Made by a program: the position numbers and the translations under genes. The notes under the pieces were generated by a model that was given only the letters and a program-made list of their open reading frames with translations, was not told the DNA's origin and made no database searches. This document shows positions 322-37,154 of a stretch of 64,000 nucleotides of DNA, one piece after another. Origin of the DNA: Paramoeba atlantica (lineage: Eukaryota; Protista; Discosea); NCBI GenBank assembly GCA_977017575.1, contig CDRNVI010000156.1, positions 62,001 to 126,000 on the forward strand, written 5' to 3'. Position 1 is the stretch's first letter. Each line of letters begins with the position of its first letter.

Positions 322-1551
<1,230 letters not shown>

Positions 1552-1945: not shown

Positions 1946-4900
1946 ATGGATGAGAGGTCTTTTATTCCTCCTCTCCACTTTTCTTCTGAGGGAGTGGAGG
2001 AGAAAGAAGACGAGAAGAAGGGAAAAGAAAAAAAGAAAAAATCCAAAGAGAAGAGGAAGAGTCCCTCCTGGTCAAAGTTGCTTTCTCCTCGAAAGAAGAA
2101 CTCTTCAAAAATTCGTCCAAGTCAGTCAGAAATCCAAGGCCATCATCGTGGTGAAGAGAAAAGTTTTTTCACCGACCCTTTTCACAAATCTTCTTCTTCT
2201 CGACCCCGATCCCCACACACACCCCGCCAGACAAGCAAAAAGAGTTTAAAAGAAGGAATTGAAGAAAGTACAAAATCAAAGACTCCTCGTGGAGTGTCTT
2301 CATCAAAAAAATCCTTGAAAGATAGGTTTCTTCCTTTTTTTTCCAAAAATAATTTTCTTTCTTCTGATTTCATCCATTCATTCTCACAATTTTTTTCTTT
2401 CAAAGCAAAATCACCAGAATACACAGAGATCCTCACCCAGATTTCATCAGCAAGGATAAACAGAACTATTCTCATTCATTAGATGATTTACTTCCACCAG
2501 ATAGATCTTCAATGATGATGATGGCAAATGAATGGAAACCTTCTGATTCTGATGAATTGGACGAAAGAACTGACGTTGTTGGGAATGGAGAACAGCCCCA
2601 AAAACTTGAAACAGCTGCAGAAAGAAAAGGAAGGACTCTTCAAGATCGAATTTCTACTTCTTCTCCTCTTCGACATCAAGCCTCTCCTCGGACATTAAGA
2701 CCCTCCTTTCCCATCGCCTCTGGATCTTTGTCTCTGTCTGATCAACTTCATCCGCAAGAAGAAGATCAACAACCCCCTGGTCTCTTACATGATCTTCCAA
2801 AATTAAAACGAAAAAGTCTTCCCCCTTTAAATGAGCCTCTTCGAGGTTCACAATCATCTCCTTTTACCTCAAGTGCAAATTCCTCGCCTCATGTTGACTC
2901 ACGTGCAACAAAAACTCCCTCTCCAACTCATTCCAAACTTTCTTCTCAGACATCAACCCTCTCTTGTCAGTCAAGTCGAACATCACCTTCTCTCTCTTCT
3001 CGATCAACACCCCAATCACCTCGATCACCTCGAACATCACCTCTTTCTTCACCACGATCACCTCGTCCAACTTCGACTCTTTTTAGAGAGATGAAAAGCC
3101 CTCGAGTTTTATTCAAGAAAATGATGGGAACTCCTGACCCAGCCCTTAGTGATTCATCAAAAAGTGATGTTGAAAATAGTACGCCACCCATTCCACAACG
3201 CGGACAATCAACCCTTTCTTTCTCTCCCCAGAGTTCTCGTCTTCCAGGAACAAATTCACGGAGTCCATCTCCCCCGTCTCCTCTTTCTTCTCCCCCTCCT
3301 GCTGTCGTATCACCAACTCCCTTTTTAGCTATGTCCCCAACAGCTTCTGGAAATTTGAGTCGATTCTTTAGGTTTGGATCAAGTATTGGAACAGCTCCAA
3401 GAAAGCAATCTTTTTCCTATGAAGAGAAAAGGTTTCAAGGTGATGAGTATGAGGAGATTGTTTGCTGTTTGACGAAAATGGATTCTGTTGAAAAGAAAGA
3501 TTTTTTTGTTGCGTTTGATATTTTTCAGATTGATAAGGTTGACCTGATTTTGTTCTATTTTTATTTACAACTTATACTTTTTTAAGACAATTCTACAAAA
3601 AATTGAATCTTTTTCTAAAATGACTTCCCAAAGGAAAAACTTCTTTCAAAGATGGAGATGATGATTCAACAAAGTGGAGATGGAACAAGAAGAACAAAAA
3701 AAGCCATTATTCGAATTGCCCAAACCTGGTGGGAGATGATGTACGTCCGGTATCGTGTTTCAGATCCTTCTTTTGCAAGGTTGTTTTTTCTCATATTTTT
3801 CTTTTTCTTTTCGTTTTTTCAATTTTTTTTCCTTTTTTTTTTTTTGATGAATGATATTTCCACAGCCAACTTGATAAGTTTTTGGATTCTTTAGAACCAA
3901 CTCTAACACACTATTTGGTTTTTTGATTTGTCTCCTTCGTTTTTTCTCTCTATTCCTTAAGAATTTCAATCGTTTAACAATATTGTTGTGTTCTTTCTTT
4001 TTTTATTTTTAGGTGTGGAGAGGGATGAATTTGATGAGGTGTGGGAGTAGTTCTCTTGTTGCACAATCGATGACAGCGATAATGTTTCGAGTTTTTCAAA
4101 ACCTTCAACCTTCAGAGTTTCATGAAGGAGCTTGGGAGGTAAAAATAATCTTCTTTTTGTTTTTTTTTTTCGTGGGGGTTGTTTTGAGAGTATTTTATTT
4201 TTGAAATAACCAACCCCTTTTTGAAATATTTTTAGAAAACCGACACCAAGTATTCGAATTCTCCAAACCTCATACTTCTTGCTGATTACTTCAATCGCCT
4301 TTCGTCAATGGTTGCTGAATCAATTCTTTTTTGTGAGGGGTCTCGTGGGAATGTTTTAACATACATGATCAAATTAGCCAAACGTTTTTTAAAGGTTGTT
4401 TTCTCTTTCCTTTCCTTTCCAACAATCAAAGAGGCGGACACCATTGATGTCCACCTTTTTTTTTGATTTTATTTCTGTTCTCTTCCCCCTGTTTTCTCCA
4501 TCTTAAGAACCTTTGTTTTTTTTAGTTGCACAATTTTGAAGGTCTAGCTGCTGTTATGAGTGGATTAAATCGGTCTTTTATTCGTCGAATAAAACCCCTT
4601 TGGGTCGACCTGAACCAAAAGGTTTAATTTAATAATTTAACTCTTTTCTTCCACTCCATCCTCCCCTCCTTTTCTCTTTCTCTTTCTTAACTTTTCCCTC
4701 CTCTCTCTCCTGTTCATTTTCTTCAACATTTCTTTTATTTTAAAAATATAGTATAAGCGAGCGTTTGAATTGATGGATGAGATATTATCACCTGAGTTGA
4801 ATTTTAAGGGATATCGGGCTGCTTTGCTTACGTCTGAACCTCCTGTACTTCCTTGGGTGGCCCCGAAGGTTTCTTATTTTTTTCTTTCTTTTCTTTTCTT

Positions 4901-5476
4901 TTCTTTTCTCTTTTCTCTCTCTTTTTCTCGAATTTCAATGAAAAAGGGCGATTTTTGTAGCTCAGAGACCTCAGATTTTTGTATGATGGAAATCAACTTA
5001 CTTTGAAGGATGGATCCATCAACTTATCCCATCTGATGGTTGGTTTTTCTTTTCTTTTACTTTTCCTTTTCTTTTGAAATTGATTTTCTTTTTTTTTTTT
5101 CATTTTTTTAGGCGATTGGGGCATCAATAAGCTCGTTTTTAGATTATCAGAAGATTGAATATGAAAATGTGACAACCGAACACACGTCTCTCCTCCGATA
5201 TTTGCGTTATCGTTCCCTTTCTGAAGAAGTTTGCTATCAGCAATCACTCAATCTTTTCCCTTTGAAGCAAACCTCCTTTTCTCGCGATGTTTTTTGCTCA
5301 TTCAAACTTCCCTTTTGTTTTGCCTCCTTCTTTTTTTCTAACAAATCTCTTCTGGCTTTCAGGGTTCTTTTGGAAAAGGGGCACCAACAACTGGGGAGAA
5401 ACCTCCACCAACAAGACCACCAAGAGAAAAGAGAGCAACAAGGGAGATTAAATCGGCAGAAATTCCTCCTGTGTGA
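1946..5476 (+). CDS. RasGEF family protein (Lys-rich and Ser/Pro-rich N-terminus, REM-like domain, CDC25 domain), multi-exon
   Basis: Exons encode FQGDEYEEIVCCLTKM..FFVAF..FQIDK, FQNLQPSEFHEGAWE, FNRLSSMVAESILFC, NFEGLAAVMSGLNRS.IRRIKPLW, LNFKGYRAAL..PVLPWVAPK, LRDLRFLYDGNQ and EVCYQQSLNLFP, which match CDC25 motifs. The 3' end (stop at 5474-5476) assumes a final intron starting near 5289. Confidence 0.85.
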
Positions 5477-5971
5477 TAATGTTGGAATACAGAAGAAATT
5501 CACGGGTTTCGTTTGTACAACACCCGATATGAGATGCTATTTAAATTATGATAAATTAATGATTCACAAAGAACACACCACCCAAAATTGGTTTTCACAC
5601 ACATGAAATAAGGACAAACATACGGAAACATTTGGAAGACGTCAAGGAAAAACCAAAAAACCAACACAACAAAAAGGAGGAAAAAAAGGAATTCCGAAAA
5701 ACACAAAAATGGAAAATTAGAACCTATTTTATGATTCCAAAAAAAGAAAGCACCGCTGGACCAAAAAAGTGTGACGGTTGGTTTTTTCACCCAGAATTTA
5801 TCACGATCGGTGTTTTTGATCCCTTTTTAAAAGGCGATTGAAACCAAAAGGTTTTTTTTTCTCTTGCTTGCGGCCCTCTTTTTGTAAAAAGTGCGAGAAA
5901 GAAATCAGTCAAGTCGGTTTTCCTTTCCAATTTTTTTTCTTTTGTTTTTTTTAATCGAACAATTTTTCAGG

Positions 5972-8900
5972 ATGAAGAAAGTTTCGATTACTGAGAAGAA
6001 AAACCAATCAGAACCCCGACAAACTCGGAAGAAGGCACTTCAGTTCAAACAACGAATAAAGAAAAAGAAAGATCTCCCTTCAAGTGAACCACTTCTTTTT
6101 TCGAAGCAAGATGACTCGAAGGTTTTTTTTTTGGAATTTTCCTCAGCTGTTTTTTTTTGTGAAGTTCTCTGGGATAGGATGCAATTGGTCCATGTATTCA
6201 AAAGAGTGGGTTTCTTGATCTTCTGATTGTGAGTGCTTCTGCTTCCTCCTCACATGCATTGACATGTGTGATTTCACAAGGAGATTGGGAGGGTTCTTCT
6301 TATTATAAATCTGAGACAGGGAAAAAATCAACATTTTGGGAGTGGAATGAGAGTTGTACCTTCGTAGTGAAAGACAGTCGACAACCATTTCACCTCCAAG
6401 TTTTTGTCTTTCAAACTGTTTTTTTCATTACAATTAAGTAATTTTTGTTTTTCAAGTTATTCTCTGAGAACTTTTTTCTTGGAAGTGTGGATCTTTTTTG
6501 TCACAGACTGGATCAGTTTCAGGAGTTCCGGGTTCCAATAAATTCTTCAGACGGTGGGTTCTGCACCTTCACTTTTCATGCCCAATATTGCACAAATCCC
6601 AAAGAAGGTAAGAGATATTTTATTTTTGGTTTTTTTCCTGGGTTTGGGGTTTTTCGGTATTGTCAGAGAGCGTTGTGGTCATTGCCAGAGATCGGATCCA
6701 CACCTTCGATTGCACACCTTCAATTGCACACGTCATCCGGTGTCCACGTCATCATCTCGATTTTTTTCCTTTTTTGTTTTTTGTTTTTCTTTTTTTGGTT
6801 GTCTCTCTGAACCGCTTTTTCTTTTTCTTTCTTTTTTCTTTTCTTTGGAAGGTTTTTTGTCTCATTTTGGGTTTCCCATTCTTCATTTTCCTCAAAGACT
6901 TAAGACTGGTGATCTTGTCTTCTTTTCGGAGAGTATTGATACCGAAAAATGGGATCATGTGGCTTTGGCTTATTGTCAAGGAGAAGAAGTTTTCTTGTTG
7001 GACTCGTTGAATGATTTTGGAGTTATTCTCAACCAAACAAAGTTTACTTTTTTTCTTTCTTTTTTTCTTTCTTTTTCACTTTTTTTTTTCCAAAGAAAAG
7101 TCCATTATTCAACTTTTTCTCTTAGACGATTGTGGGAAACAATCAAAGCTGGGGGAAGAATTGGTGTGCGACATCTCTTATTCGAGAAGGAAAATCTGAA
7201 AGAGACCGCTTTACGAAAGGCAACTGATTATGTCCAGTCGATCTTGGGGATGCCATTTAATTCTCCAGAACTTTCCAAGGAAATTTTCAAGATGAATTCT
7301 TCTTCTTCTTCTTCTTCTTCCTCTGACTCTGTTTCAAAGAAAGAGGAAGGATGGTTTTGTTCGCAAGTTGTAGCAGGTTTGAAAATAATCAATTGAAAAC
7401 AAAAATTTCATTTTTCTTTTTTGATCGATTCTCAAGAATAATTTTATGATTCTTAGGTCTTTATTTTCAAATGGGGATTCTTTGTTCACCAGAAGCTGTT
7501 GGAAGCTTTCATCCTGATGATTTTTCATCTTCAAATTTCCAATTGGAAGGAAGATATTATTCTTTGTCTTCGATTCATGTTTTCCTCCAACCAATACCCC
7601 AAGTTGAAATTATAAAAACAACAACAAACAGCTTCTTTGACGAAAAAGAAGACTCTTTTTTTGAATCAACTTTTGATTCTTCTGCTGACTCAACGAGTTC
7701 AGGAATCAGTTTCTCATCCTGTGAATCGCCTCCTTTAATCCTTTCTTCTTCAACCCCCACAACCTTCCAAATCTCTCCTCAATCCTGTTCTTCCATCTCC
7801 CCTCCATTCTCTCCTTCAATCTCTTCTCCCCTTTCTTCTCCCCTTGCTTCATCAATGAGCATCTCTTCACCATCATATCTTCTTGAAGAAAGTTGTTTTC
7901 GAAGGGATGAATATGGTCAAATAGTTGATGAATTAATTCAGATGTCTTCTTTGGAGAGGAAAAAGTTTTTTATTGGGTTTACTCTTTTTGGGATTGATCC
8001 GGTCTTTTTTTCTTTTTCTCTCTTTATTGAGAATTTATTTAGATTTTTCTTTTGTTCTTATCAATCAGTTTTTATGTAACAGGTTAAATTATTGGATAAA
8101 ATGAAAGAATTGGTTGGTTGTGAAGAAAATAAAACTCCAAAAGATGATTTCAAACTTGCAAAACAACACTTTCATAAAAGAGAAATTGTCAAAGTCGTCC
8201 AAATTTGGTGGGAAACAGTTGGAAATGACTATCGAACTTTAAATCCTCCTTTAGCTGAGTTCTTTTTTTTTCTTTTTCTTTTTCTTTTTTTTCAAAAGTT
8301 GATTTTTTTTTTGTTTTTTAGGGGAATTGAAAAGTTTTTGGACTTGTTCAACTCTGAATTACCTTCTTTGGTTTGTCTTTATTGTTAACTTTTTGACCAA
8401 TTGAAAATGCATTTTGAAAAGAATACTTTATGAATTAACTTTTATTTTCAGTCAAAGAAGAAAGAGGTGAATTTTGAGTTGTGTGGGAGAGCGGTAGCAG
8501 TGACACAGACATTAACTTTAATGATGTGGGGGACTTTTCAAAACATTCAAGCTTCAGAGTTTCTTGATGGAGCTTGGGAGGTTTTTATTTGTTTTAATTA
8601 TTTTATTTTTTTTTTTGGATCATTTCTAATTGTGTTTTTTCTTCCTTTTGTTTTAGAGAAGAGAACAATCACCACATTTAGCTGCCATGTCAGATACTTT
8701 CAATAGACTGTCTTCAATTATTGTTGAATCAATTCTTTTCAGTGCAGACCAATTTCGACATCGTGCGTTACAATATTCAATCAAACTGGCAAACCTCTTT
8801 TGGACGGTATTTGTCTCATTTCACTGAGAGAATTTTTCTTTCTTTCTTTTTATTAATCTTTTTTTTCGTTCTGAAGATGAAGAATTTTCAAGGATTGGCT

Positions 8901-9784
8901 GCAGTGGTCAGTGGTTTGAATCAATCTTCAATCACACGTTTGAAACCCCTTTGGGCTGATCTCAAAACCAAAGTTTGTTTTTCTTTTCATTTCTCCCAGA
9001 TATTTTCTCAAAAGAAGAAGAGGAAATCTTTTTTTTTTAAATTAACCATTTTACCATTAGTATCGAAAGAAGTTCCAGTTTTTTGACCAACTTTTGTCTC
9101 CGAATAAGAATTTCAAAAATTATCGAAAAATTTTGCAACTGACCGAACCTCCAATCCTCCCTTGGTTAAGTCCAAAGGTTTTTTTTTAATTTCTTTTTTT
9201 ACTTTTCTTTTGTTTTTTTAATTGTTTTTTTTTTTTAATTTTTTGGTTTTGGTGTTAGTTGAGGGAATTGCGATTTTTGTATGATGGTAATTCAACTACC
9301 AACGAATTTGGTTCTGTGAACCTCACACATTTGATGGTTTTTCTTTGATTTTCTTTTCTTTTCTTTTTCTCTTTCCCCTTCTCATTTTTTTTTCGTTTGG
9401 GATAGAATATTGGAGAGTCAATTCAATCCATTTTGGATTATCAAAAACAAGAATTTGTGTTTTTGTCTCCTTGTTGTTGTGATAAGTCATTACTTCTTCA
9501 TTTTCTCAATTCTCTATCCATCCCTGAGGTCTTTTTTTTGTTTCATTTTTTATTTATTTTGTGACGAAATACTGTTCGTTCGTTCGAAAAATACTCATGT
9601 TCTTCAATAATAGGAGACTTGTTATCAACAATCTCTTTTAATTGTCCCACAAGGTCAATTGCCAAAAATCAGGAGTTCATCAACCTTCGAGAAACTCTCG
9701 ACCTTCCCACCCGCCCATAAGAGCGCTCCCTTATTTACTAAAAGGAGCCCCCCTTCTTCCCCTCTAAAAAGAACGCCCCGTTAG
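5972..9784 (+). CDS. C2 domain + permuted papain-like (YiiX/YaeF, C92-type) domain + Ser-rich linker + RasGEF (REM-like, CDC25) fusion, copy 1
   Basis: C2: GFLDLLIVSA...STFWEWNESCTFVV...LFSENFFLGSVDL. C92-like: LKTGDLVFF...WDHVALAY...FCSQVVAGLYFQMGIL...FHPDDF. RasGEF: FRRDEYGQIVDEL, FNRLSSIIVESIL, NFQGLAAVVSGLNQSSITRLKPLW, LPWLSPK, LRELRFLYDGN. The exons join in frame through GT-AG introns. Confidence 0.82.
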
Positions 9785-10293
9785 CCCAATCCCGTCAAAC
9801 ATACATTAGAAAAATGATCCTTGATTATTGATTCTTGAGGTACTTTTTGAAAAAAATTCTCTCAATTTTTCGTTTTATCGGAAGAGAAGAAATTCACGGG
9901 TTTCGTTTGCACAACACCCGAGATGAGAGACTATTTAAATTATGATAAATTAATGATTCACAAAGAACACACCATCATAAAATCAAATCCATTCAACAAA
10001 GAAATGGACGTTTAAAAAAAAGGGGCCATTTTGCGTTCGTTCCAAAAAAAGAAAGCATTTGGACCAAAAAGTGTGACGGTTGATTTTTACCCCCGAAAAG
10101 AACCAGATTGGTTTTTTTGATCCCTTTTTTGAAAAAGAGATTGAAACCAAATTTCTTGGCGGTCGTATTTTGGGAAAAAGTGCGAGAAAGAAACCGGTCG
10201 AGTCGGTTTTGAAAAGTGCGAGGGAGAAATAAGTCAAGTCGGTTTTCACACAATTTTTTCTTTTGTTTTTTTTTAATCGAACAATTTTTCAGG

Positions 10294-13200
10294 ATGAAGA
10301 AAGTTTCGATTGCTGAGAAGAAAAACCAATCAGAACCCCGACAAACTCGGAAGAAGGCTCTTCAGTTCAAACAACGAAGAAAGAAAAAGAAAGATCTCCC
10401 TTCAAGTGAACCACCTCTTTTTTCGAAGCAAGATGACTTGAAGGTTTTTTTTTGGAATTTTCCTCAGCTGTTTTTTTTTTGTGAAACTCTCGGGGATAGG
10501 ATGCAATTGGTCCGTGTACTCAAAAGGGTGGGTTTCTTGATCTTCTGATTGTGAGTGCTTCTGCTTCCTCCTCACATGCATTGACATGTGTGATTTCACA
10601 AGGAGATTGGGAGGGTTCTTCTTATTATAAATCTGAGACAGGGAAAAAATCAACATTTTGGGAGTGGAATGAGAGTTGTACCTTCGTAGTGAAAGACAGT
10701 CGACAACCATTTCACCTACAAGTTTTTTGTCTTTCAAACTCTTTTCCTCGTTACAATGAATTAATTTTTTGTTTTTCAAGTTATTCTCTGAGAACTTTTT
10801 TCTTGGAAGTGTGGATCTTTTTTGTCGCAGACTGGATCAGTTTCAGGAGTTCCGGGTTCCAATAAATTCTTCAGACGGTGGGCTATGCACCTTCACTTTT
10901 CATGCCCAATATTGCACAAATCCCAAAGAAGGTAAGAGATTTATTTTTGGTTTTTATTCTGGGTTTGGGGTTTCGGTTTCGGAAGACCGCAGAGAGAGTT
11001 TCCCGTTGTCCCGGAATGTTCGACCGGATCCACGTCATCCGGTGTCCACGTCATCGATTTTTTTCCTTTTTCGTTTTTTTGTTTTTGTTTTTTGTTTTCC
11101 TTTGTTTTTCTTTTTTTTTGGTTGTCTCTCTGAACCGCTTTTTCTTTTTCTTTCTTTTTTCTTTTCTTTGGAAGGTTTTTTGTCTCATTTTGGGTTTCCC
11201 ATTCTTCATTTTCCTCAAAGACTTAAGACTGGTGATCTTATCTTCTTTTCGGAGAGTATTGATACCGAAAAATGGGATCATGTGGCTTTGGCTTATTGCC
11301 AAGGAGAAGAAGTTTTCTTGTTGGACTCGTTGAATGATTTTGGAGTTATTCTCAACCAAACAAAGTTTACTTTTTCTTTCTCACTTTTTTGACAAAGAAA
11401 ATAAGCTATTCAACTTTTTCTCTTAGACGATTGTGGGAGACAATCAAAGCTGGGGGAAGAATTGGTGTGCGTCATCTCTTATTCGAGAAGGAAAATCTGA
11501 AAGAGACCGCTTTACGAAAGGCAACTGATTATGTCCAATCGATCTTGGGGATGCCGTTTGATTCTCCAGAACTTTTCAAGGAAATTTTCAAGATGAATTC
11601 TTCTTCTTCTTCTTCTTCCTCTGACTCTGTTTCAAAGAAAGAGGGAGGATGGTTTTGTTCGCAAGTTGTAGCAGGTTTGAAAATAATCAATTGAAAACAA
11701 AAATTTCATTTTTCTTTTTTTTGATCGATTCTCAAGAATAATTTTATGATTCTTAGGTCTTTATTTTCAAATGGGGTTTCTTTGTTCACCAGAAGCTGTT
11801 GGAAGCTTTCATCCTGATGATTTTTCATCTTCAAATTTCCAATTGGAAGGAAGATATTATTCTTTGTCTTCGATTCGTGTTTTCCTCCAACCAATACCCC
11901 AACTGAAAATCGTAACGAGAACAAACAGCTTCTTTGACGAAAAAGAAGACTCTTTTTTTGAATCAACTTTTGATTCTTCTGCTGACTCAACGAGTTCAGG
12001 AATCAGTTTCTCATCCTGTGAATCGCCTCCTTTAATCCTTTCTTCTTCAACCCCCACAACCTTCCAAATCTCTCCTCAATCCTGTTCTTCCATCTCCCCT
12101 CCATTCTCTCCTTCAATCTCTTCTCCCCTTTCTTCTCCCCTTGCTTCATCAATGAGCATCTCTTCACCATCATATCTTCTTGAAGAAAGTTGTTTTCGAA
12201 GGGATGAATATGGTCAAATAGTTGATGAATTAATTCAGATGTCTTCTTTGGAGAGGAAAAAGTTTTTTATTGGGTTTACTCTTTTTGGGATTGATCCGGT
12301 CTTTTTTTCTTTTTCTCTCTTTATTGAGAATTTATTTAGATTTTTCTTTTGTTCTTATCAATCAGTTTTTATGTAACAGGTTAAATTATTGGATAAAATG
12401 AAAGAATTGGTTGGTTGTGAAGAAAATAAAACTCCAAAAGATGATTTCAAACTTGCAAAACAACACTTTCATAAAAGAGAAATTGTCAAAGTCGTCCAAA
12501 TTTGGTGGGAAACAGTTGGAAATGACTATCGAACTTTAAATCCTCCTTTAGCTGAGTTCTTTTTTTTTCTTTTTCTTTTTCTTTTTTTTCAAAAGTTGAT
12601 TTTTTTTTTGTTTTTTAGGGGAATTGAAAAGTTTTTGGACTTGTTCAACTCTGAATTACCTTCTTTGGTTTGTCTTTATTGTTAACTTTTTGACCAATTG
12701 AAAATGCATTTTGAAAAGAATACTTTATGAATTAACTTTTATTTTCAGTCAAAGAAGAAAGAGGTGAATTTTGAGTTGTGTGGGAGAGCGGTAGCAGTGA
12801 CACAGACATTAACTTTAATGATGTGGGGGACTTTTCAAAACATTCAAGCTTCAGAGTTTCTTGATGGAGCTTGGGAGGTTTTTATTTGTTTTAATTATTT
12901 TATTTTTTTTTTTGGATCATTTCTAATTGTGTTTTTTCTTCCTTTTGTTTTAGAGAAGAGAACAATCACCACATTTAGCTGCCATGTCAGATACTTTCAA
13001 TAGACTGTCTTCAATTATTGTTGAATCAATTCTTTTCAGTGCAGACCAATTTCGACATCGTGCGTTACAATATTCAATCAAACTGGCAAACCTCTTTTGG
13101 ACGGTATTTGTCTCATTTCACTGAGAGAATTTTTCTTTCTTTCTTTTTATTAATCTTTTTTTTCGTTCTGAAGATGAAGAATTTTCAAGGATTGGCTGCA

Positions 13201-14082
13201 GTGGTCAGTGGTTTGAATCAATCTTCAATCACACGTTTGAAACCCCTTTGGGCTGATCTCAAAACCAAAGTTTGTTTTTCTTTTCATTTCTTCCAAATGT
13301 TTTCTCAAAAGAAGAAGAGGAAATCTTTTTTTTTAAAATTAACCATTTTACCATTAGTATCGAAAGAAGTTCCAGTTTTTTGACCAACTTTTGTCTCCAA
13401 ATAAGAATTTCAAAAATTATCGAAAAATTTTGCAACTGACCGAACCTCCAATCCTCCCTTGGTTAAGTCCAAAGGTTTTTTTTTTAATTTCTTTTTTTCC
13501 TTTTCTTTTGTTTTTTTTTTTGATTTTTTGGTTTTGGTGTTAGTTGAGGGAATTGCGATTTTTGTATGATGGTAATTCAACCACCAACGAATTTGGTTTT
13601 GTGAACCTCACACATTTGATGGTTTTTTTTTGATTTTCTTTTCTTTTCTTTTTCTCTTTCCCTTCTCATTTTTTTTTCGTTTGGAATAGAATATTGGAGA
13701 GTCAATTCAATCCATTTTGGATTATCAAAAACAAGAATTTGTGTTTTTGTCTCCTTGTTGTTGTGATAAGTCATTACTTCTTCATTTTCTCAATTCTCTA
13801 TCCATCCCTGAGGTCTTTTTTTTTGTTTCATTTTTTATTTATTTTGTGACGAAATACTGTTTCGTTCGTTCGAAAAATACTCATGTTCTTTAATAATAGG
13901 AGACTTGTTATCAACAATCTCTTTTAATTGTCCCACAAGGTCAATTGCCAAAAACCAGGAGATCAGATTCCCAGAAACTCTTGACCCCTCCCTTCTTATC
14001 CACTAAAAGGAGCCCCCCTTCTTACCCTCTAAAAGGAACGCCCCCGTTAGCCCGTCCAGTCAAACAGACATTAGAAAAATGA
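10294..14082 (+). CDS. C2 + permuted papain-like (C92-type) + RasGEF fusion, copy 2 (tandem paralog)
   Basis: Near-identical to 5972-9784 (several ORF-track translations are identical, e.g. 8092 vs 12389 and 8467 vs 12764). Same motifs and intron positions; the C-terminus differs slightly (...GTPPLARPVKQTLEK*). Confidence 0.82.
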
Positions 14083-14194
14083 TCCTTGATTATTGATTCT
14101 TGAGGTACTTTTTGAAAAAACATTCTCTCAATATTTCGTTCAAATGATCCAAAAAAATATTTATCTTTTTTTTTTTTTGGTAGAGAAAGAAATC

Positions 14195-16768
14195 TTATGG
14201 AGCTCGCTCATTATCTTGACGAGGGGCATCATGAGGATAATCTTGAACTAAAATCACTTCAATTGCTTTATCTGATGGAGGGTCAAGGTTTCTGAAGTAA
14301 ACAGTGAGCGCATTTTCCGCATTCACGAAGTAAGGTTCATCGCCAATGAGATCCTACATATTGAGAAGAGGAAGGAAAAGATTGTTTGGTTGAGTTATCA
14401 AAAAAAAAAAAAAAGGAAAGAAGAGTCTTGTTGGTGAGTGAAGATCTCTTCACAACATTCTTGAAAGAAAGAAAATGAAAAAAGATACCCCAGCATCATT
14501 GTAAAACTGATAAGTGTATTGTCCTTGTGTTGGTTCATCATAAGCACTATTTAAGAAAATCAAATTTAAGACATCTTCGAAAAAGAAAAATGAAAAAGAA
14601 GAAGATTTTAAAAAATGGAACCTGGAAGTGAATTGAGCAATTTTGCTGGCCACAAGAAACCCATTTCGATACACAGTCACATCTTTTTTGGAGAAAAAAA
14701 TAAAATTAATTGAATTTTTGTTGTATTTTTTTTGTGTGTGTTTTTTTTTTGACAAAGCAAAGGAGAAAGGGAGGGAAAGAAAACCTTGGTTAGCAAGATT
14801 AATAAATCTGATCATTCCCTTTGTTTGTTTAACAGTATTGTCATCATCGAAAAGGAGCAACTAAAAGAAAGAGAGAGATCAGAGATAATTATGGGTGTGT
14901 AAGGTCGATCATCAATCTTCATCAATCAACATTTAAAAAAATTGAAAAGAAAAGAAAGAAAACCTGGCCACCACTTCCACCACCAGGAGCATCAGTGACC
15001 ACAAGAGTATGCCAAGTATTAACAGTGGTATCAACACTCACAGTTCCAATCAAAGCTCCAGTGTTCTGATAATAAGCTAAAGAAAAAGAAAAGTATTGAG
15101 TTTCTAATTTTGATTGGGATTGGTAAAAAAAAAAAAAGAAAGGTGAAAAAAGACAAACCAGAAAATTTTTGGAGTCCTTGATTTGGGGGACCATCAATGT
15201 AGTAAGTCTACAACATCAAAACATTTAAAATACTTTTCTAAACAAATAAAATCAAATCAAAAAAACAAAAAAAACCTGTTCCAAAGCTCGAAGGAGAGGG
15301 GTTGACCAATTACCATTCTCTTCAATAAAGAAAATGGGTCCAACTCCTTCTCCCTATTTGAAATTGAACAATCGAACAAAAAAAAAGAAAAAACACTCGA
15401 ACAAAAACAAACAAAAATTTAATCACAAACAACAACAAAAAAAAAAGAGAAAGAGAAAAGAAAATCAAAACCCGGTTTTGAGCATTATAACCACGAACAT
15501 GAAGAACATCAGTTCGAGCAGGAGGTTCACGTGTTTGGTTGGGAATATTGTACAAATTTCCAACATTTCGGCAATTTCTGTTGTTTTTGTTTTATTTTTT
15601 ATATTAGAAAGAAGAGAGAAAAAGAAAGAGTGGAAAAGGAAGAAGACGAACGGAGGATAAGAAGGAGGGAGACTGACTTGGAATATTCTTGTCCCATCCT
15701 GATAAAAAATAATCATTTAATAATATGATTTATAAAAAAAAACAAAAGAGAATATGAAAACAATCACAAATAACAAATAATCTAAATCATAAATCATAAA
15801 ATAAATCACAAAATAATTTAAAATAAATCACAAAATAATTGAATAAAAATAACAAAAAAAAAAAAAGTGAACCAGACTCCCCAACTATGATGATCATTTC
15901 GTTCATATCCAGAATTAGGATGAACAAAGACAGAGAAAGGACCTCTATTTTGCATCATCCATGGAACAACATGAGCATAATCATCCAAAGTAAAGAAAGC
16001 GGCCCATTGAGAAACTGGGAATGGTCCAAATGGAACCTTTTGGTTTGTTTTTGAAAGAGAAAAAAGAATTAATTTCATTTAATTTCATCAAATGAATCAA
16101 AAAAAACAAATCATCCTTCATAGAAAAAAGAGAAAAAAACAAAAAAAAAACAAAAAAAAAAACAAAAAAAAAACAAAAAAATAAAACAAAAAAAAAAACC
16201 AAAGCAACAGGAAAGAGACACATCCTCCCCTGATCAAAATCACCCTCACAAGTGATATTGGAATCAAAAGGATTCAAATTAAACTCAGAAATGAACATAT
16301 CTCGAAGTGTCATTGCCTCGTCATATCCAGTGCATGCATCGCTCTTTTTGTTATGAAAAAGGGGAAAAGAAAAAGGAAGAAGAAAGGAGAGAGAGAGAGA
16401 GAAGAAGGAGAGAGAATTAGAAGAATTTTTTTGATATGAAACATGAAACTCTCTCTCTCTTTCCTCTTTGCCCAAAAAAATATTAAAAAAAAAAGAAAAA
16501 AAACCTGGTGTTCTGGTTGAAAGAGAACATGTACATGATAACTTCGGAATGGAGGAAGAGTTGGCGCTACCCAATCCTCTTTTTTTTAAAGAAAAGAAAG
16601 AAAAGAAAAAGAAGAAAAAAGAAGAAATGGATCAGTCATAAAAAATAGAAGAGATCAAAAAAGAAGAAAAAAAGGGTGAGAAAAACCTGTAACATCAGGA
16701 TATTTGGTTGGATGGGAGTAAACCACATCCAACACCAAAAAGCAAAAAAGAAGAAGAACACTTTTCAT
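14195..16768 (-). CDS. Secreted DOPA 4,5-dioxygenase-like protein with C-terminal DUF4397-like beta domains, multi-exon
   Basis: Signal peptide MKSVLLLFCFLVLDVVYS. Dioxygenase motifs SYHVHVLF, VPFGPFP..QW, VVPWMMQNRGPFSVFVHPNSGYERNDHHSWGVW-MG. Downstream exons (LHVRGYNA, TWHTLVVTD, LLLFDDDNTVKQTKGMIRFINLA, DVTVYRNG) resemble DUF4397. The fusion depends on my splice calls near 15700-15470. Confidence 0.68.
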
Positions 16769-17142
16769 TTTCTCTCTTTTCTCTCGTTTCGAAAAAGAAA
16801 ACGCTCTTTGGAAAAAAGAAAACAAAAAAAAACCAAAAAACCAAAAACCAAAAAAAACGAACAAAATTTTCCTAGAAGTGACGTCATTATTATTCACCAA
16901 ATTAAGCAAAATTTTGGTGGACACCACCGAAAATTTTTGATAATTTTTTCGAGTCTTTTTAACTTTATAACCATGCAATAAATACATATATGAATAATTC
17001 TAAAGTCCTTCAACTCCCTTTTTGAGGGTAGCAGCCGGTTCAAAGAACTTTCCTTCCGATGACACCGTTTGAATTTTCCTGAATCAGTTCTGCGAGAAAA
17101 TTCGTTCAGTTTTCGGGGCAGGGAAAAACATCTGCGGGGCTT

Positions 17143-19723
17143 TTAAAATTTTATCATCAGGGAGAGAGGACGTGGTGTGGTGGGAGGAGAAAAAGAGTTT
17201 TGGGGACTGTTTGGTTTGGGGGAAGTATGAGGAGGTCGAAGAGGAAATAATTCAATCGATTTTTGATAACACACTTCCTATTCTCAATAGATTTCAGGAA
17301 AAACAAACGACAAAAAAAAAAATTAAAAACTTGGGAAAGAAAAAAAAAAAAACCTCTGAGACAGAACGATCTTTCAACAGTTGAAGAAGAACAGTTTTGT
17401 CAATTGCCGGATCGAGTTCATAATCACATTTTTGATACCTCAAATATGATCTGATGGAAAATCCAATCTCCTGTTCTCAAATTAATTTAGAATTAACTCT
17501 TTCAAAAAAAAAAGTGAAAGGTTCCAAAAAAGAAAGAAAGAAAATAAAATCAAAACCGCCAGATGTGGCAAATTGAGGCACCCATTTTGGAAAGTTGTTT
17601 GATTTCCATCATACAAAAATCGAAGTTCCCTTAACTATATTCACACCAAAAAAAATGAATGAAATTTGTTTAGTTTTTAAAGTAAAAATCAAAAATAAAC
17701 AAAAAAACCTTTGGACTCAACCAAGGAAGTAAAGGAGGTTCAGTAAGACTCAGCACGTTTCGATATTCTCTGAAATTGAACTCTGGAAACAAGAATTGGT
17801 CCAACAATTCAAAGGTTCTTTTGTACTTTTCGAAAAAAAAGGAAGGATCAGTTTTGTGATTTGCAGCAAAATTATAAGCCAAAAAAAAGAAGAAAAGAAA
17901 AACTTTGGAATTGAGGTCAACCCACAATGGTTTTAACCGTCGAATAGATGCCTGATTCAAACCACTCACAACCGCTGCTACCCCCTCAAAATTGCGCATC
18001 TGTGGTGAATGGTGTCAGAAAAGATGGTACAAATGATATATATTTTTTGTTTTGTTTTGTTGTCGACAATAATAATAAAAAAAAAAGAGGAACCTTCCAG
18101 AATCGTTTTGCGAGTTTGATCGAAAAAATCAAGGTTGGGCGTCTTGCCGCTTCCTCACACGAAAGAATCGATTCAACAACTATTTCAGAGAGTCGATTGA
18201 AGTTTCCAATCATCTTCATCACATTAGGAGCTTTTTGGTATCGTTCCTCTTTCTGTGGTTACAAAAAAAATTAAGTACATTTGGATTCGAATCCCCCCAA
18301 GAAAGAGACATCGTTTTACATTCGAAAAGAAGAAGAACTATTCTTATACCTCCCAAGCTCCATCATGAAATTCTGAATATTGAATATTTTGATAAGATTG
18401 AAACATAATCGATGTTAGCGATTGTGCAACTTGAAGAACAGTTCCACACTTCATCAAATTCGTCCCTTTCCAAGCCTAATTTTGGGAGTTGTGAGAAGGG
18501 TTGTTTTCCTTCCTTTTGGAGGAAAAAAAAGAAAAAAAGAACCAAAATATGTGAAAAAGGAACTTCCAAAGAGTCAATTAAAAGATTCATTTCCCTTTTT
18601 TAAATAAAAATCATTGAATTGTCGAAAAGAAGGAGAAAACGAATGAAAGAAACACACAAAAAAAAGAAACCTGGTAAGAGAAGGGTAAAACGATCGATAA
18701 TACTTTCCAAATATTTTGTTCCAGATTTGAAGAATCTCGACAATGTCTTCCTTTTTTGAATTTGAAACTTCTTCATCAATCATTTGCTCCATCTTTCGTA
18801 GTAATTGAATCTGTCCCAATCGTTTTAGAGAGAAAATTGAAGAAGACTCTTTTTCCAAAGAAAAAAAAAGTCGAAACTGAATCAATTTGAACTTTCTCAA
18901 ATCCAATAAAGAAAAACTCCTTCTGTTCAAGAGACATTTGAAGTAAACTTTCGATGATCTGTTCATAATCAGTCTTTCCAAAGAGATGTTCTTCACAACG
19001 AAAAGAGTTCAAAGGTGAAGCAGAAGAAGTTGTAAAACCATGACTATACGTGTTTGATTTTGGTGATAATGAGAAAGAAGATGAAGAAGAAGATCCAAAA
19101 GGTTGAAGAGTTGGAGAAGTATGATTTCGTGGCGATTGGAATCTCTTTGCTGAAAACGGATTGAAGAAGAGATCATCTTCATCGTCGTCGATTCCAAGAT
19201 CCCCCGTGAATTTCTGAGTTTCTTTCTCTTTCAAACTCTGGGAGGAAAGAGGACTTTTATATCCCTTGAAGAGAAAAGAATTTCTTTTTAACTTTTTTGT
19301 TTTTGGAGTTGGAGGAGACATTGAGGACTGACGAGAGACCGAGGCCGGAGGAGAGACCGCTGAGGAACGTAGAGAAGAAGATTTCGAAGAAATGAAAGAG
19401 ATCTCAGGGGATGTTGGAGAAGATGATGAATGAGAACGAGGTGATTGAGGCAAAGGGAGAGATGGAGGAGAACTTGGAGGAGAATTTGTTGGAGAACTTG
19501 TTGTCGGAGGAGAAATAGGAGAACGAGGAGAACGTCGAAGAGATTTTGACTTTTTTGCCAACCCTCCTCCTGCCCCTGCTGGCGAACTTTTCTCTGTTCC
19601 TGGAAGGTGATCCTTGAAACAAGGTTCTGGGAGGGAATCACTCTTGATATTCTCTTGTTCTTGTTTCTTTTTTTTCTCTCTTCGTTTTGAGAAAAATTTT
19701 GGGAAAGTGGCATTTTTTTCCAT
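17143..19723 (-). CDS. RasGEF family protein (Ser/Pro-rich N-terminus, REM-like, CDC25)
   Basis: HLFGKTDYEQIIESLLQM..FFIGFEKVQID, GNFNRLSEIVVESILSCEE, NFEGVAAVVSGLNQASIRRLKPLW, FNFREYRNVL..PPLLPWLSPK, EVCYQKSIELFP. Intron positions match the other paralogs. Confidence 0.86.
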
Positions 19724-19874
19724 CTTTTTGCTCTTTGTCCCAAAAAAAAAAAAGTGTTTCCAAAAAAAGGAATTCAAAAAGAACGAGACACCAAAAAGAG
19801 AGAAAAATCAAAAAACCGTCGAAATTTCGATCAAATAATTTAAATAGCGCCCTTTAAAAAAGAGAATCTTTATT

Positions 19875-22800
19875 TTATTTCTTCTTGTCTGTTGGTTCTG
19901 TTGGTTCTGTTGGTAAATAAAAATGGGCACGGCCGTTTGAACAAGGATTCTTCAAAACCCCCAACTTCTGACAAGAAGAACAAAAATATTGTTGACAACC
20001 TAAACACGCAGCTCGATTTAAAGAATCTGCCTCAACGCAACATCGAGAACAGGGCACTGAACATTTTTCGATGGCTTGTCTGTTGGTTGGTTCTGTTGGT
20101 TCTGTTGGTTCTGTTGGTTCTGTTGGTAAATAATGATGGGCTCGCCCATTTGAACAAGGATTCTTCAAAACCCCCAACTTCTGACAAGAAGAACAAAAAT
20201 ATTGTTGACAACTTAAACATGCAGCTCGATCTAAGGAATCTGTCCCAACACAACATCGAGAACATGGCACTGAACATTTTTCGATGGCTTGTCTGTTGGT
20301 TGGTTCTGTTGGTTCTGTTGGTAAATAATGATGGGCTCGTCCATTTGAACAAGGATTCTTCAAAGCCCCCAACTTCTGACAAGAAGAACAAAAATATTGT
20401 TGACAACCTAAACACACAGCTCGATCTAAAGAATCTGTCCCAACGCAACATCGAGAACATTGCAAAGCTGGTAAATAATGATGGGCGAGTCCGTTCGAAC
20501 AAGGATTCTTCAAAACCCCCAACTTCTGACAAAAAAAACAAAAAGAATGTTGACAAGCTGAACAGATTGCTCGACTGAAAGAGTTTGTCTCAACACAACA
20601 TCGTGAACATTGTACCTTACATTCGAGGGTCACTTCCTTCTGACCTCCCTCCACTAAACAAGCATTGCGTACCAGAGAACCTGATTTCCTCTTATTCCTC
20701 TTTTCTGTTTAAAAAAAAATGAGTGGGAGAGAGTGGGTGGAAATCATAAAAAAAAAATGACCTGTACTCAGTCTTTTTAAGTCTTTTCTTGATGTTTTCT
20801 TTATGAGGCGTTTGGGAGTGGAAATATCAGAATTCCCTTCCCCCAGTGGTAAATGGGAGATATCAATGTACTCTTGTTTGACCGGAGTTCCTTCAATGGA
20901 GGGATTCTCCCCTTCCTCTCCCACTTCTTTTTCTTTTTCTCTTTTCCTTTTCTCTTCATCCTCTCCCTGAGGTGTAGGAGGAGTTTTGGGAGCGAAAGGA
21001 GAGCCAGAGAATTGTGGAGAGTTATCAGGAAGGGTGTGAGAAGCGAGATTGGGGGTATTTTGAAGAGAAGGAGTACGGGGGTACAACTCCAAAGATTTTT
21101 GATAACATTCATCCTATTCCATTTTCAATTCAGAAAAAATCAATATTTATGTGGGAAATAAAACAGGTCATCAGAATCACAAGGTGAAAGAGACCTTGGA
21201 GACAGAACGATCTTTCAATAATTGAAGAAGAGCAGTTTTGTCAATTGTTAGTTTGAATTCATATTCATAAGATTGGTATTTGAGGAATGATCTAATCGAA
21301 GATCCAATCTCCTATTAGTCATAATTTTTAGAATAACTCTTTGAAAATAATAAAAATAGAAAAAAAAAAAAAGAAGACCATCAGGTGTGGCAAATTGATA
21401 AAGCCAGTTTTTAATGTTGTTTGGTTTCCATCATACAAATATCGAAGTTCCCGTAACTGTTCACCCAGAACAAATGTAAATATCATAAAAATCCCAAAGA
21501 TCAGAAAAAAAAAACCTTTGGACTCAACCAAGGATGTAAAGGAGGTTCAGCAACACTCAGTGCATTTCGATATTCTTTGAAATTTCCTTCTGGTGATATC
21601 AGTTGGTTCAAGGTTTCAAACGTTCTTTTGTGCTTTTTGAAAAAAAATATTAATTTTTTGATTTCATTAAATCAGAAAAAGAAAAATAAACTCTGGAGCT
21701 GAGGTCAATCCACAATGGTTTTAATCGTCGAATAGGTGCTTGATTCAAACCACTCATAACTGCTGCTACCCCTTCAAAATTGTTCATCTGTGGTTTAATA
21801 AAATAGAAAGTGTAAATTGTTTGTCTTTTTTCAGATTTAGTTTTTTGTTTGGAGATAGACAAAAAAAAGGGACCTTCCGAAGTTGTTTTGCTAATTTAAT
21901 GAGATAAACCAACATTGGACGACGTGCTGCCTCTTCACATGAAAGAATTGATTCAACAACAATTTCAGAGATTCGATTGAAGTTGTGTGTCATTGTCATC
22001 ACATTTGGAGATTTTTGATATTTTTCTCCTTTCTGGGTGAGTAAAAAAGATAATAAAACAAAAAAACATTAATCATTATTTGAAAAACTAAAATGAAATG
22101 AATCAATTAACCTCCCAAGCTCCATCATAAAACTCTGAAAATTGAAGATTTTGATAAGATTGAAACATAATTGATGTCAATGATTGTGCAACTTCACCAA
22201 AAGTCCCATACATCATCAAATTTGTTCCTTTCCATGCCTATTTTTTGAACTGAGTTTCAAAAAAGAAGTTTCAAAAATTCAAAATGAAAAAAAGAAACCA
22301 AAATTTGTGAAAAAGAAACTTCCAAAGTGTTTAATAATGTTTTCATTCGACTATTGTTTTCATCAATTTAGAAGGTGATTGATGAGGAAAATAAGAGTAA
22401 AAGGGTAAAAAGAAAGATAAACCTTGCAACAGAAGGTAAGAATGATTGATAATATTTTCCACATGTCTTGTTCCAGAGTTGTAAAACTCTCACAATTTCT
22501 CCTTTTTTTGTCGTATCTTCTTTTTCTTCAATCATTTGTTCCATCTTTTCTAACAATTGAATCTGTGTGTGTGTGGGGAGGAGGAGGAGGAGGGGGAGAT
22601 AATAAATTGGTTGTGAGTCAAATTTGCGAAAATTGAAAAAGAAAAGTGAAAAACAGAAAAAAAACTAACTGGATCAATTTCAAATTTCTCAAAACCAACA
22701 AAAAAGAAATCTTCTTCTTCAGGAGGCATCTGGAGCAAACATTCAACGATCTTTCCATACTCATCCTTTTCAAAAAGATGATCTGTACTACAAAAGGATT

Positions 22801-23440
22801 TCTTCTTTGGGTGATGTATCGCGTCACTAATCGTTTTAGATCTTGGTGTTAAACCAAAAGGACGAAGAGAAGGACCTTCACTTGGAGTTTTGCAAAATCG
22901 GGGGGTCATTGGAGATCGACAGAGCGTCTTTTGGCTTTCTCCTCCTGTTGTCTCTCCTGTTGTTGATGACAATGGGCTCCTCTTTATCTTTGTGGGTTGA
23001 GTTTGTGAGAAAGAAACACTTGCAAAAAAAGAACGAGGAGAAGAGGGTGTGGGTGATGATTCAGAAGAGGGTGAAGGCGTCTGAACAGTAGTGGTGGGTG
23101 ATTGAGAGTGAGAGGATGAAGAAGGAAGAGGGTTCAATAAGATAGGTGTTACTTTAGTGGGAGGAATTGGAGAGGTAAGGGAAGGGTGCAAAGGGCGTGG
23201 AGAAGATTTAGTTTGAGTAGTTGGCAGAGGATCCTGGGGAGGTGGTTCACGAGAGCTATTGGATGGAGAGTCAGTCCTGAGTGGTGGGCATGATGATACG
23301 TGGTTGAGAATTGACTCGTAATCTGAGAAAGATTGGCTCCTTCTGCTCCGAGTCCGAATGCCATTCCTGCTGCTATTCCTGCTGCTGTCCTTCCGTTTTA
23401 AAAGGAAGACCTTTGGCCCAGGACTTTTTCTTGACTCCAT
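19875..23440 (-). CDS. RasGEF with 4 C-terminal Cys7-His (ZZ/IBR-like) zinc-finger repeats, array copy 1
   Basis: Starts MESRKSPG and has the full REM-like/CDC25 exon set. The exon DECYQKSLELYPRTPSL (homologous to the terminal EVCYQKSLELxP exon of the other paralogs) continues through a phase-1 intron into EKRNKRKSGSLVRNACLVEGGQKEVTLECKVQCSRCC... and four repeats (ORF 19875-20654). Confidence 0.83.
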
Positions 23441-24091
23441 CAATCGAGGCGGTGGGCAGTGGGGAAAAACTGAAAGTGATTCAATGACCGTCTATTTGTG
23501 GTTTGGAACGCTGAAAAAAACTCCCAAAAAATCAAACGGGGCGGGAAATAATAACCGGTTTTCAAATAACTCCTTCCAAAAATAGTCAAAATAAACCCAA
23601 ATTGCCCAAATAAGAGAAAACGATAAACCCAAAGAAATGTTTTTTTCGGGGTTGTTTTTGTTTTGTTTTCGTTTTTTTGTTTGTCCGCTTTTTTTTCCTT
23701 TTTTTCCTCCAATTTCTCTCCAATAATTTCGTTCCATGGGTTCCTCTTTGAAATGGATGCGCACAGTTTGAAGTTGGTTGAGGGGCGCACTCAGAGACTC
23801 AACACCCTAGAGCGAGGAATTGTGGGATATCAAATGAAGTGAAGAGAGACGAGTGGGGGAGTTGGAGGAGTTGGAGGAGTTGGAGGAGAGGTTGAGACTG
23901 CAATGCTGGGGAGAAACACTTGAAATGAATCAAGTTGTTATCTTTCACAAATACATTCTTGATATTTTTCGCTCTGATAAAACTGTAAAAGGGGTGACCT
24001 ATTATTCTTGTCAAAAAACAGAAAGGAATAAAAAAAAACAAATGGATCACTCAAGAACCTCGGAGGCAACCGCACCACCAGAGGAGGTGAG

Positions 24092-27200: not shown

Positions 27201-27531
27201 AAAGACCGGATGAAGAAGGAAGAGGGTTCAAGATAGGTGTTCCTTTTGTGGGTGGAATTGGGGAGGTAAGGGAAGGATGCAAAGGGCGTGGAGAAGATTT
27301 AGTTTGAGTAGTTGGTAGAGGGTTCCGGGGAGCTGGTTCGTGAGGGCTTTGGGATGGAGAATCATACCCGAGGAGTGGTGGGCATGATCCGTGGTTGAGA
27401 ATTGGCTCGTAATTTGAGAAAGATTCGCTCCTTCTGCTCCTTCTGCTCCCTGTCCTGCTCTGAGTCTTGCTGTTGCTGTTCTTGCGATTTAAAAGGAAAA
27501 CCCTTGGCCCAGGACTTTGTGTTGACTCCAT
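24222..27531 (-). CDS. RasGEF with 2 C-terminal Cys7-His repeats, array copy 2
   Basis: Starts MESTQSPGPRVF with the same exon set as copy 1. The two repeats lie in separate exons (ORFs 24528-24779 and 24222-24425) separated by a duplicated intron. Confidence 0.82.
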
Positions 27532-32002: not shown

Positions 32003-32117
32003 ACCCCAATTGGGTCAATGCAACTTCATTCAATAAATCAAGCACTTTCTGAGTAATTGGAGTATTCCTGCTTGGTTTCTCTCTCTTCCTTATTTCCCTT
32101 TCTCTCTTCTCTCTCTA
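32003..32117 (+). pseudogene. Second copy of the kexin-like exon/intron fragment
   Basis: Same sequence as 24092-24224 with the same GAG TAA nonsense change. Confidence 0.85.

Positions 32118-37123: not shown

Positions 37124-37154
<31 letters not shown>

Follow-up and report, generated by a model that had tools for sequence, protein, structure and literature searches.

Near the start of the 64,000-nucleotide stretch of Paramoeba atlantica DNA analysed here (contig CDRNVI010000156.1, positions 62,001 to 126,000; hereafter the window) lie two tandem genes, copy 1 and copy 2, each of which is predicted to join a C2-like domain, a circularly permuted papain domain of the YaeF/YiiX (C92) type and a guanine nucleotide exchange factor domain for Ras-family GTPases (RasGEF) in a single polypeptide. 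A sequence-only reading had drawn copy 1 as one fused gene running from 5972 to 9784, and both of these end coordinates are right. The motifs on which it drew (GDLVFF, WDHVALAY, FCSQVVAG/LYFQMGIL and FHPDDF), together with the C2-like stretch and the REM-like and CDC25 parts, are all found in frame on the forward strand. The order of the parts along the copy 1 product is a basic N-terminus, the C2-like domain, the permuted papain domain, a Ser-rich linker of ~95 amino acids, a REM-like region and the CDC25 RasGEF domain. The features of the two genes are as follows, with amino acid numbering that of copy 1.

5972..9784, forward strand: copy 1, whole gene; 15 exons, 865 amino acids, hand-built model
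5972-6121, 6178-6399, 6457-6607, 6852-7041, 7126-7376, forward strand: copy 1, exons 1 to 5
7457-8001, 8083-8258, 8322-8370, 8452-8580, 8657-8806, forward strand: copy 1, exons 6 to 10
8877-8972, 9061-9177, 9259-9336, 9406-9528, 9614-9784, forward strand: copy 1, exons 11 to 15
5972..6121, forward strand: exon 1, a short Lys-rich N-terminus of 50 amino acids, with the sole in-frame ATG able to feed exon 2
6178..6607, forward strand: C2-like beta-rich domain, amino acids ~51-174 (~125 residues), exons 2 and 3, with a W-N-E-x-C-x-F-V-V motif; common to all four paralogues
6852..7617, forward strand: YaeF/YiiX-type (C92, PF05708) circularly permuted NlpC/P60 domain, amino acids 175-375, exons 4, 5 and the 5' part of exon 6; assigned with hhalign
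6911..6913, forward strand: Asp195 of the GD motif, aligned with YiiX D25
6956..6958, forward strand: His210 in W-D-H-V-A, the predicted catalytic His, aligned with YiiX H49; invariant in the four paralogues
7001..7003, forward strand: Asp225, the predicted third triad residue, aligned with YiiX E64; Glu in the paralogues on contig L001
7256..7258, forward strand: Phe282, at the position of the conserved oxyanion Tyr (YiiX Y115, BcPPNE Y127)
7358..7360, forward strand: Cys316 in W-F-C-S-Q, the predicted nucleophile, aligned with YiiX C128; invariant in the four paralogues
7457..8001, forward strand: exon 6, a single uninterrupted exon of 181 codons, with the C-terminal part of the papain domain (~50 residues), the Ser-rich linker and the start of the REM-like region
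7618..7737, forward strand: fusion junction zone, amino acids 376-415, between the end of cassette homology and the start of RasGEF homology
7900..8370, forward strand: REM-like region, amino acids ~470-575, the 3' end of exon 6 and exons 7 and 8; assigned by position and pattern only
8452..9658, forward strand: CDC25-homology RasGEF catalytic domain, amino acids ~579-824, exons 9 to 15; Pfam PF00617
10294..14082, forward strand: copy 2, tandem duplicate; 15 exons, 867 amino acids, exons projected from copy 1 with every splice site kept

Copy 1 starts at the ATG at 5972 and ends with the stop codon at 9782-9784. The window is plainly eukaryotic, with a guanine-plus-cytosine (GC) content of ~36% and coding segments broken up by short T-rich GT-AG introns. 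Every intron of copy 1 is of this type (56-244 nucleotides, T-rich), and the donors are mostly GTTTKT. The hand-built model can be regarded as calibrated in this respect, since the ~230-nucleotide intron of the ribosomal protein L5 (RPL5) gene of the same window (322-1415, reverse strand), which is validated by a transcript-derived protein, has the same style (GTTTGT...TAG, T-rich). Exon 5 is placed at 7126, where the acceptor 7125/7126 is in frame in both copies and stands at the same intron position as in the paralogues; the acceptor at 7095/7096 was rejected, as it would frameshift copy 2. A candidate extra exon at 6667-6739 was also rejected: it is rich in indels and unconserved in copy 2, and the paralogues join the end of the C2 part straight to the start of the papain part. 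The least certain exon of the model is exon 1, because its ratio of non-synonymous to synonymous substitution rates (dN/dS) between the copies is ~1, on very few changes.

The identity of the middle domain is best seen from a comparison of profiles. The query was built from four spliced C2-like/papain cassettes, namely those of both window copies and of two related genes, A and B, on a second contig, L001 (see below). It was set against a C92 profile of 11 bacterial sequences comprising Escherichia coli YiiX and YaeF, YiiX orthologues and YaeF-like plasmid genes. The hhalign comparison of the two gave a probability of 97.9%, an E-value of 5.2e-13 and a score of 86.5 over 154 columns, against scores of 10.7-17.1 for controls made from the reversed query and 30 column shuffles, and of 12.9 for the C2-like part aligned to C92. 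When the target was divided, the P-value was 8e-4 against YiiX alone and 3.6e-5 (probability 71.5%) against YaeF alone, and the E-value was 1.4e-4 against the YiiX subgroup and 3.4e-10 against the YaeF-like subgroup. To put the last of these on a scale, the YiiX and YaeF groups find one another at a comparable E-value of 1.4e-12. A MAFFT alignment independently puts the same anchor residues in place. By these alignments, the middle domain is of the circularly permuted YaeF/YiiX (C92) NlpC/P60 type, nearer to the YaeF-like subgroup, as the sequence-only reading had proposed together with an intact His/Cys dyad.

Pfam matches to the same domain are weak. The input here consisted of exon pieces and a 174-amino-acid read-through of the stop-free, 84-nucleotide intron 4, and the papain domain matched only NLPC_P60, with E-values of 0.0034-0.012, and Peptidase_C92, with an E-value of 0.025 for one piece; the Pfam LRAT family was not matched by any of the exon pieces or the read-through construct scanned. 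Neither phmmer with the papain region against PDB sequences nor a profile search of the PDB returned a match.

The order of the predicted catalytic residues is colinear with H49, E64 and C128 of YiiX, in that His210 and Asp225 come before Cys316, which is the hallmark order of the circular permutation. The residue numbering is in agreement with Xu et al. 2011 (PMC3142127). Asp225 stands 15 residues after the His, as does E64 in both YiiX and BcPPNE, and this spacing is 15-16 across the four paralogues. The GD motif, the His, the acidic residue and the Cys are all present in both window copies and in both L001 paralogues. The predicted triad is intact, but one signature residue, the oxyanion Tyr, is replaced; in other words, to speak of an 'intact active site' would not be fully true.

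Downstream of this domain, the C-terminal assignment as a CDC25 RasGEF, made in the sequence-only reading too, is solid on the Pfam evidence: four exon pieces match PF00617 colinearly, at model positions 3-28, 35-78, 83-113 and 116-152 of 181, and one CDC25 piece of 32 amino acids reaches 31.4 bits by itself, with a cut-off of 23.1. The pattern and position of the REM-like region are common to all the RasGEF paralogues in the window; no pairwise similarity was found between it and a Pfam-annotated REM fragment from L001. For the first domain, 'C2-like' is the best label, albeit a weakly supported and unproven one, because of its motif, its length of ~125 residues and the known pairing of permuted papain enzymes with C2 and PH domains. 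Judged by eye, the domain appears to lack the classical Asp clusters. The intron that divides it includes a stop codon.

The fusion itself lies inside one exon and one reading frame, in both copies. The gene is not a product of chance: exon 6 alone comprises 181 stop-free codons at 36% GC, and the domains have statistical support. On the upstream side of the junction, homology to the unfused paralogues ends at ~amino acid 376, the very point at which gene A of L001 has its stop codon. From ~amino acids 416-446 on, the protein is homologous to what the neighbouring RasGEF paralogues encode towards the 3' end of their first exons. This sharing of an exon and a frame bears out the single fused gene of the sequence-only reading in one respect, since it answers part of the worry that the two parts might have separate transcripts; no spliced protein was found in the collections searched.

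The unfused paralogues are on L001, an 85.8-kb ENA contig found through a 71-amino-acid phmmer match.

L001 8264-13400: two tandem unfused C2-like/papain genes, A and B, next to a mitochondrial-type L3 gene

Between genes A and B the cassettes share 50% identity, and with the window cassette they share 40-42%; the positions and phases of the cassette introns are conserved between them and the window genes. Both have N-termini of 350-400 amino acids, and a scan of that of gene A found no Pfam family. The stop codon of gene A follows directly on the papain domain, such that at least one of the two L001 genes ends there. Just downstream of gene B and in frame with it is an open reading frame of 546 amino acids (L001 13530-15170) made of tandem repeats of ~55 amino acids, without a Pfam match, which may either extend gene B at its C-terminus or be a gene in its own right.

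The window and L001 come from the same species, P. atlantica, an amoebozoan of the Dactylopodida, or a very close relative, because RPL5 of the window (325-1167, reverse strand) is 100% identical over 269 amino acids to a P. atlantica MMETSP0151 protein (and 73% identical to that of P. aestuarina), and L3 of L001 is likewise 100% identical to a P. atlantica MMETSP0151 protein. The L001 genes are therefore, by sequence, old paralogues within one species and not orthologues. Since unfused cassette genes exist elsewhere in this species, gene A of them ending after its papain domain, it appears that the window genes arose by in-frame fusion. A cassette gene would have become connected in frame, through its last exon, to the first exon of a RasGEF gene belonging to the tandemly amplified array of 13, and the fused gene would then have been tandemly duplicated. 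On these comparisons, this is the simplest history, and a lineage-specific one.

As for the duplicate, the sequence-only reading had noted that the gene is present twice, and copy 2 indeed yields an intact model. Positions 5880-9874 and 10207-14140 are 94.3% identical in nucleotides, and the C2-like/papain cassettes of the copies are 96% identical as protein. Copy 2 retains Asp195, His210, Asp225, Phe282 and Cys315. The larger length differences between the copies fall in introns 3, 4 and 12 (79, 22 and 14 gap columns), while the indels found in exons are of 3, 3 and 21 nucleotides, all in frame. The equivalent of exon 6 in copy 2 is 11757-12298, which differs from that of copy 1 by nine substitutions and one in-frame indel of 3 nucleotides. 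Between the copies, dN/dS is 0.35 in the C2-like and papain region (10 synonymous and 13 non-synonymous changes) and 0.13 in the RasGEF part; across the domains it is 0.13-0.36, and for exon 1 and the C-terminal tail 0.8-1.0. Such values are consistent with constraint on the domains, on small counts.

An additional feature of the pair is a tract of 971 bp, covering exons 7 to 11 with their introns, over which 8002-8972 and 12299-13269 are 100% identical. Elsewhere the copies diverge by ~4-6%, which points to a recent gene conversion between the two tandem genes.

Relatives of the cassette are confined to the same species as far as the searches reach. With phmmer, the papain region has a single match among 1.84 billion protein representatives, the 71-amino-acid exon fragment of L001, and a search of 5.8 billion clusters with the profile retrieved nothing besides the exon of L001 itself; no cassette relatives appeared in scans of JGI metagenomes or viral contigs. 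At phmmer or profile sensitivity, then, the cassette family appears to have no detectable relatives outside P. atlantica. A literature search for RasGEF with NlpC found no such protein, and we know of no RasGEF with an accessory domain of the thiol-hydrolase type. The attachment of a RasGEF to a permuted papain domain thus appears undescribed, being absent from the databases and literature searched, where no protein of the same architecture was found. The claim of novelty in the sequence-only reading, which extended to the whole combination of membrane module, thiol enzyme and exchange factor, needs to be narrowed accordingly: the parts are known, the pairing of C2 or PH domains with a permuted papain enzyme is already known (PMC3142127), and only the addition of the RasGEF is new.

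It is instructive to set the window genes beside the known systems that they resemble. With YaeF/YiiX they share the His before the Cys, the GD motif, the acidic residue at +15, an L-G-x-P-[YF] motif and the [WFY]-F-C-S-[QE] helix start, all of which align. Unlike the bacterial enzymes, the window domain is eukaryotic, split by introns and set within a multidomain signalling protein; it also has Phe for Tyr, a poly-Ser loop just before the Cys, and exon pieces that fall below the Pfam threshold. A putative membrane-binding domain directly N-terminal to the papain domain is likewise seen in permuted papain proteins with C2 or PH domains or lipoprotein signals, such as a Plasmodium PH-domain homologue (PMC3142127). 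The unfused L001 paralogues have exactly this two-domain layout, to which the window genes add the C-terminal REM-like region and CDC25 RasGEF.

At that C-terminal end the likeness is to the CDC25 RasGEFs of Amoebozoa, of which the large Gef family of Dictyostelium is an example. The window genes have in common with these the REM-like and CDC25 (PF00617) parts, membership of an expanded tandem family and low-complexity N-termini. The difference lies in the cassette, which is carried by only two of the 13 RasGEF genes in the window.

Two further families offer analogies of function. There are reports that functionally link the PLAAT/H-rev107 family ('HRAS-like suppressor') to Ras signalling. 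These proteins and LRAT are permuted NlpC/P60 enzymes too, and act on phospholipids via an acyl-Cys intermediate (PMC3142127). The likeness to the window genes is one of function only, as the motifs in the window are of the YaeF type, with C-S after an aromatic pair, and without a Pfam LRAT match. The second is RID, a domain of the MARTX toxins which targets Rho GTPases and fatty-acylates lysines of GTPases. Like the window domain, RID is a permuted papain-like Cys/His domain (it is named as such in PMC3142127), and its substrates are small GTPases. RID differs in being a bacterial toxin domain without an exchange factor; no sequence relationship was seen, no test for one having been made, and RID serves here only as a precedent for the lipid-anchor editing considered below.

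In YiiX, a fatty acid is bound in a hydrophobic S1 tunnel, and the enzyme has been proposed to be a fatty-acyl amidase or to act in some other fatty-acid-linked reaction, for example palmitoylation (Xu et al. 2011, PMC3142127). LRAT and H-rev107 have lipid substrates and an acyl-Cys intermediate, many permuted papain enzymes are targeted to membranes, with frequent C2 or PH fusions, and the oxyanion Tyr is apparently essential in NlpC/P60 and LRAT enzymes (PMC3142127). By analogy, the window genes on balance probably encode an exchange factor for Ras-family GTPases which works at membranes and whose cassette binds or turns over a fatty-acyl substrate. The RasGEF part would act on its GTPase at the membrane, while the N-terminal cassette would supply the lipid or membrane engagement. 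The fatty-acyl substrate would be bound or turned over via Cys316, as judged from YiiX and LRAT/PLAAT, and this engagement would localise or regulate the output of the exchange factor.

A number of observations weigh against this reading. Where the family has its oxyanion Tyr, both window copies and L001 gene A have Phe, and of the four only gene B has Tyr. AlphaFold2 modelled the papain domain with a predicted local distance difference test (pLDDT) score of 38.3 from the family-only alignment and of 48.6 with YiiX orthologues added, on a construct which was without the C-terminal 50 residues, contained 28 amino acids of intron read-through and had its Cys helix cut by the exon boundary. The best Foldseek hit of the second model, the permuted enzyme 3KW0 of Bacillus cereus, has a non-significant E-value of 0.29 and is not independent, as the input alignment held YiiX. 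The C2 domain named in the sequence-only reading is matched by Pfam (PF00168) below threshold only, on the first C2 exon of the L001 paralogues (E-values of 0.075 for gene A and 0.0081 for gene B, both within model positions 21/31-70 of 104); the window's own C2-like exons have no Pfam C2 match and a PDB profile search found no C2. Nor did the two REM-like exon pieces scanned match Pfam RasGEF_N (PF00618). The papain region and exon 6 match no spliced protein in collections that include the P. atlantica transcriptome proteins, among which none of the four cassette genes was found. The linker holds in-frame Met codons which would permit a RasGEF-only product. Lastly, the dN/dS of the C2-like and papain region rests on just 23 substitutions.

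The first of these points puts the catalytic competence of the thiol domain in doubt, because the family's oxyanion Tyr is here Phe282. It may be that the domain is catalytically dead and is retained as a lipid- or acyl-binding module, which together with the C2-like domain anchors the exchange factor or gates it allosterically. The Tyr is absent from three of the four paralogues, and binding without turnover is plausible, as YiiX holds its fatty acid in a hydrophobic tunnel. Against this, although the paralogues share only ~40% identity, all have the Cys, the His, an acidic residue and the GD motif in unchanged or conservatively altered form, and such retention would be unexpected of a pure binding module. 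Moreover, Phe stands in the same column in two of the 11 sampled bacterial C92 proteins, and gene B still has its Tyr. A dead enzyme is thus a possibility to be taken seriously, if an unlikely one.

The linker Met codons and the missing transcripts bear on a different explanation, in which the locus gives two products, a C2-like/papain protein and a RasGEF made from an internal promoter or a linker Met, the frame through the fusion being incidental. That gene A clearly ends after its papain domain, and that all other RasGEF paralogues in the window begin at a Met of their own, with a first exon rich in Ser and Pro, would both fit such an arrangement. It is difficult to reconcile, however, with the junction, where neither a stop codon nor a splice donor stands between the parts, where the 181-codon exon and its frame are shared by both copies, and where the sole change of length in exon 6 is in frame; separate products are therefore considered improbable.

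To return to the exchange factor with an acyl-binding or acyl-processing cassette, a more specific version of it can be envisaged. The thiol domain could edit, in cis, the lipid anchor carried by whichever GTPase the attached exchange factor activates, removing or transferring a fatty acyl group, for example by depalmitoylation or by fatty-acylation of lysine or cysteine of the kind known from RID-type permuted papain domains. Were this true, one polypeptide would couple nucleotide exchange to the attachment of Ras-family proteins to the membrane or their release from it. Such editing must be thought a distinctly remote prospect. Least probable of all is that the fused genes are young, unexpressed or decaying duplicates without a function of their own, for while they are absent from the transcriptome-derived proteins of the species, differ by only ~4-6%, such that intact frames are weak evidence of selection, and show dN/dS of 0.8-1.0 in exon 1 and the C-terminal tail, all splice sites of the 15 exons are intact in both copies, the exon indels are in frame with the largest length differences in introns, dN/dS in the domains is 0.13-0.36, and the catalytic motifs are kept in comparison with paralogues of 40% identity.

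Beyond the two fused genes, the window is dominated by their relatives. Within the 64 kb there are 13 CDC25-type RasGEF genes on both strands, most of them with a long Ser/Pro-rich first exon that ends in the same REM-like motif. Their approximate coordinates are as follows, copies 1 and 2 being the second and third.

2512-5270, forward strand: RasGEF gene 1
5972-9784, forward strand: RasGEF gene 2
10294-14082, forward strand: RasGEF gene 3
17560-19777, reverse strand: RasGEF gene 4
21379-23443, reverse strand: RasGEF gene 5
25235-27627, reverse strand: RasGEF gene 6
29017-31349, reverse strand: RasGEF gene 7
32655-35150, reverse strand: RasGEF gene 8
47058-49364, reverse strand: RasGEF gene 9
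50680-53036, reverse strand: RasGEF gene 10
54490-55796, reverse strand: RasGEF gene 11
56593-58574, forward strand: RasGEF gene 12
60129-63321, forward strand: RasGEF gene 13

Ras-pathway genes are also found on L001, where an exon of a Ras-superfamily small GTPase (15541-15723, forward strand; Pfam Ras, E-value 1.6e-14) and a RasGEF gene (17065-18307, reverse strand) are both less than 5 kb from the unfused cassette genes. That the cassette lies beside Ras-pathway genes at both loci may be a coincidence, given the many RasGEFs.

Between the reverse-strand RasGEF paralogues of the window are Cys-rich open reading frames with repeats of ~50-60 amino acids (19875-20654, 27945-28526 and 32115-32771, all on the reverse strand). 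They have the pattern C-S-R-C-C-V ... C-Q-x-x-F-C-x-x-C-Q-K ... N-P-C-S-N-G and may be separate genes or exons of their neighbours; two of the three were scanned with Pfam and gave no match. A further reading frame of 251 amino acids at 53586-54341 (forward strand) has a signal-peptide-like N-terminus and two Cys-rich repeats, also without a Pfam match. Two paralogous single-exon Ser/Thr protein kinases with low-complexity N-termini (Pfam Pkinase, E-value ~1e-44) lie at 41583-43106 and 45558-46757 on the forward strand. The region of ~36000-40500 is of low complexity and strongly T-skewed, with a GC content of 28-33%, and holds only spurious-looking reading frames rich in Phe, Leu and Ser. Scans for tRNA and Rfam families gave nothing useful.

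Ras-family signalling depends both on nucleotide state and on lipid-mediated membrane anchoring, which are normally under separate enzymes. Lineage-specific accessory domains are common on amoebozoan RasGEFs, and the importance of the present case is limited for this reason, as well as because the fusion has to date been seen in a single amoeba lineage and has no expression support in the transcriptome proteins searched. Within these bounds, one species displays the making of the architecture, from unfused cassette genes and a tandem RasGEF array to a junction inside an exon. The poorly characterised YaeF/YiiX family would thereby gain a eukaryotic context that hints at substrates, and a natural protein in which a RasGEF is joined to a thiol enzyme of a lipid-handling family would offer a compact model of how nucleotide state and membrane anchoring can be coupled.

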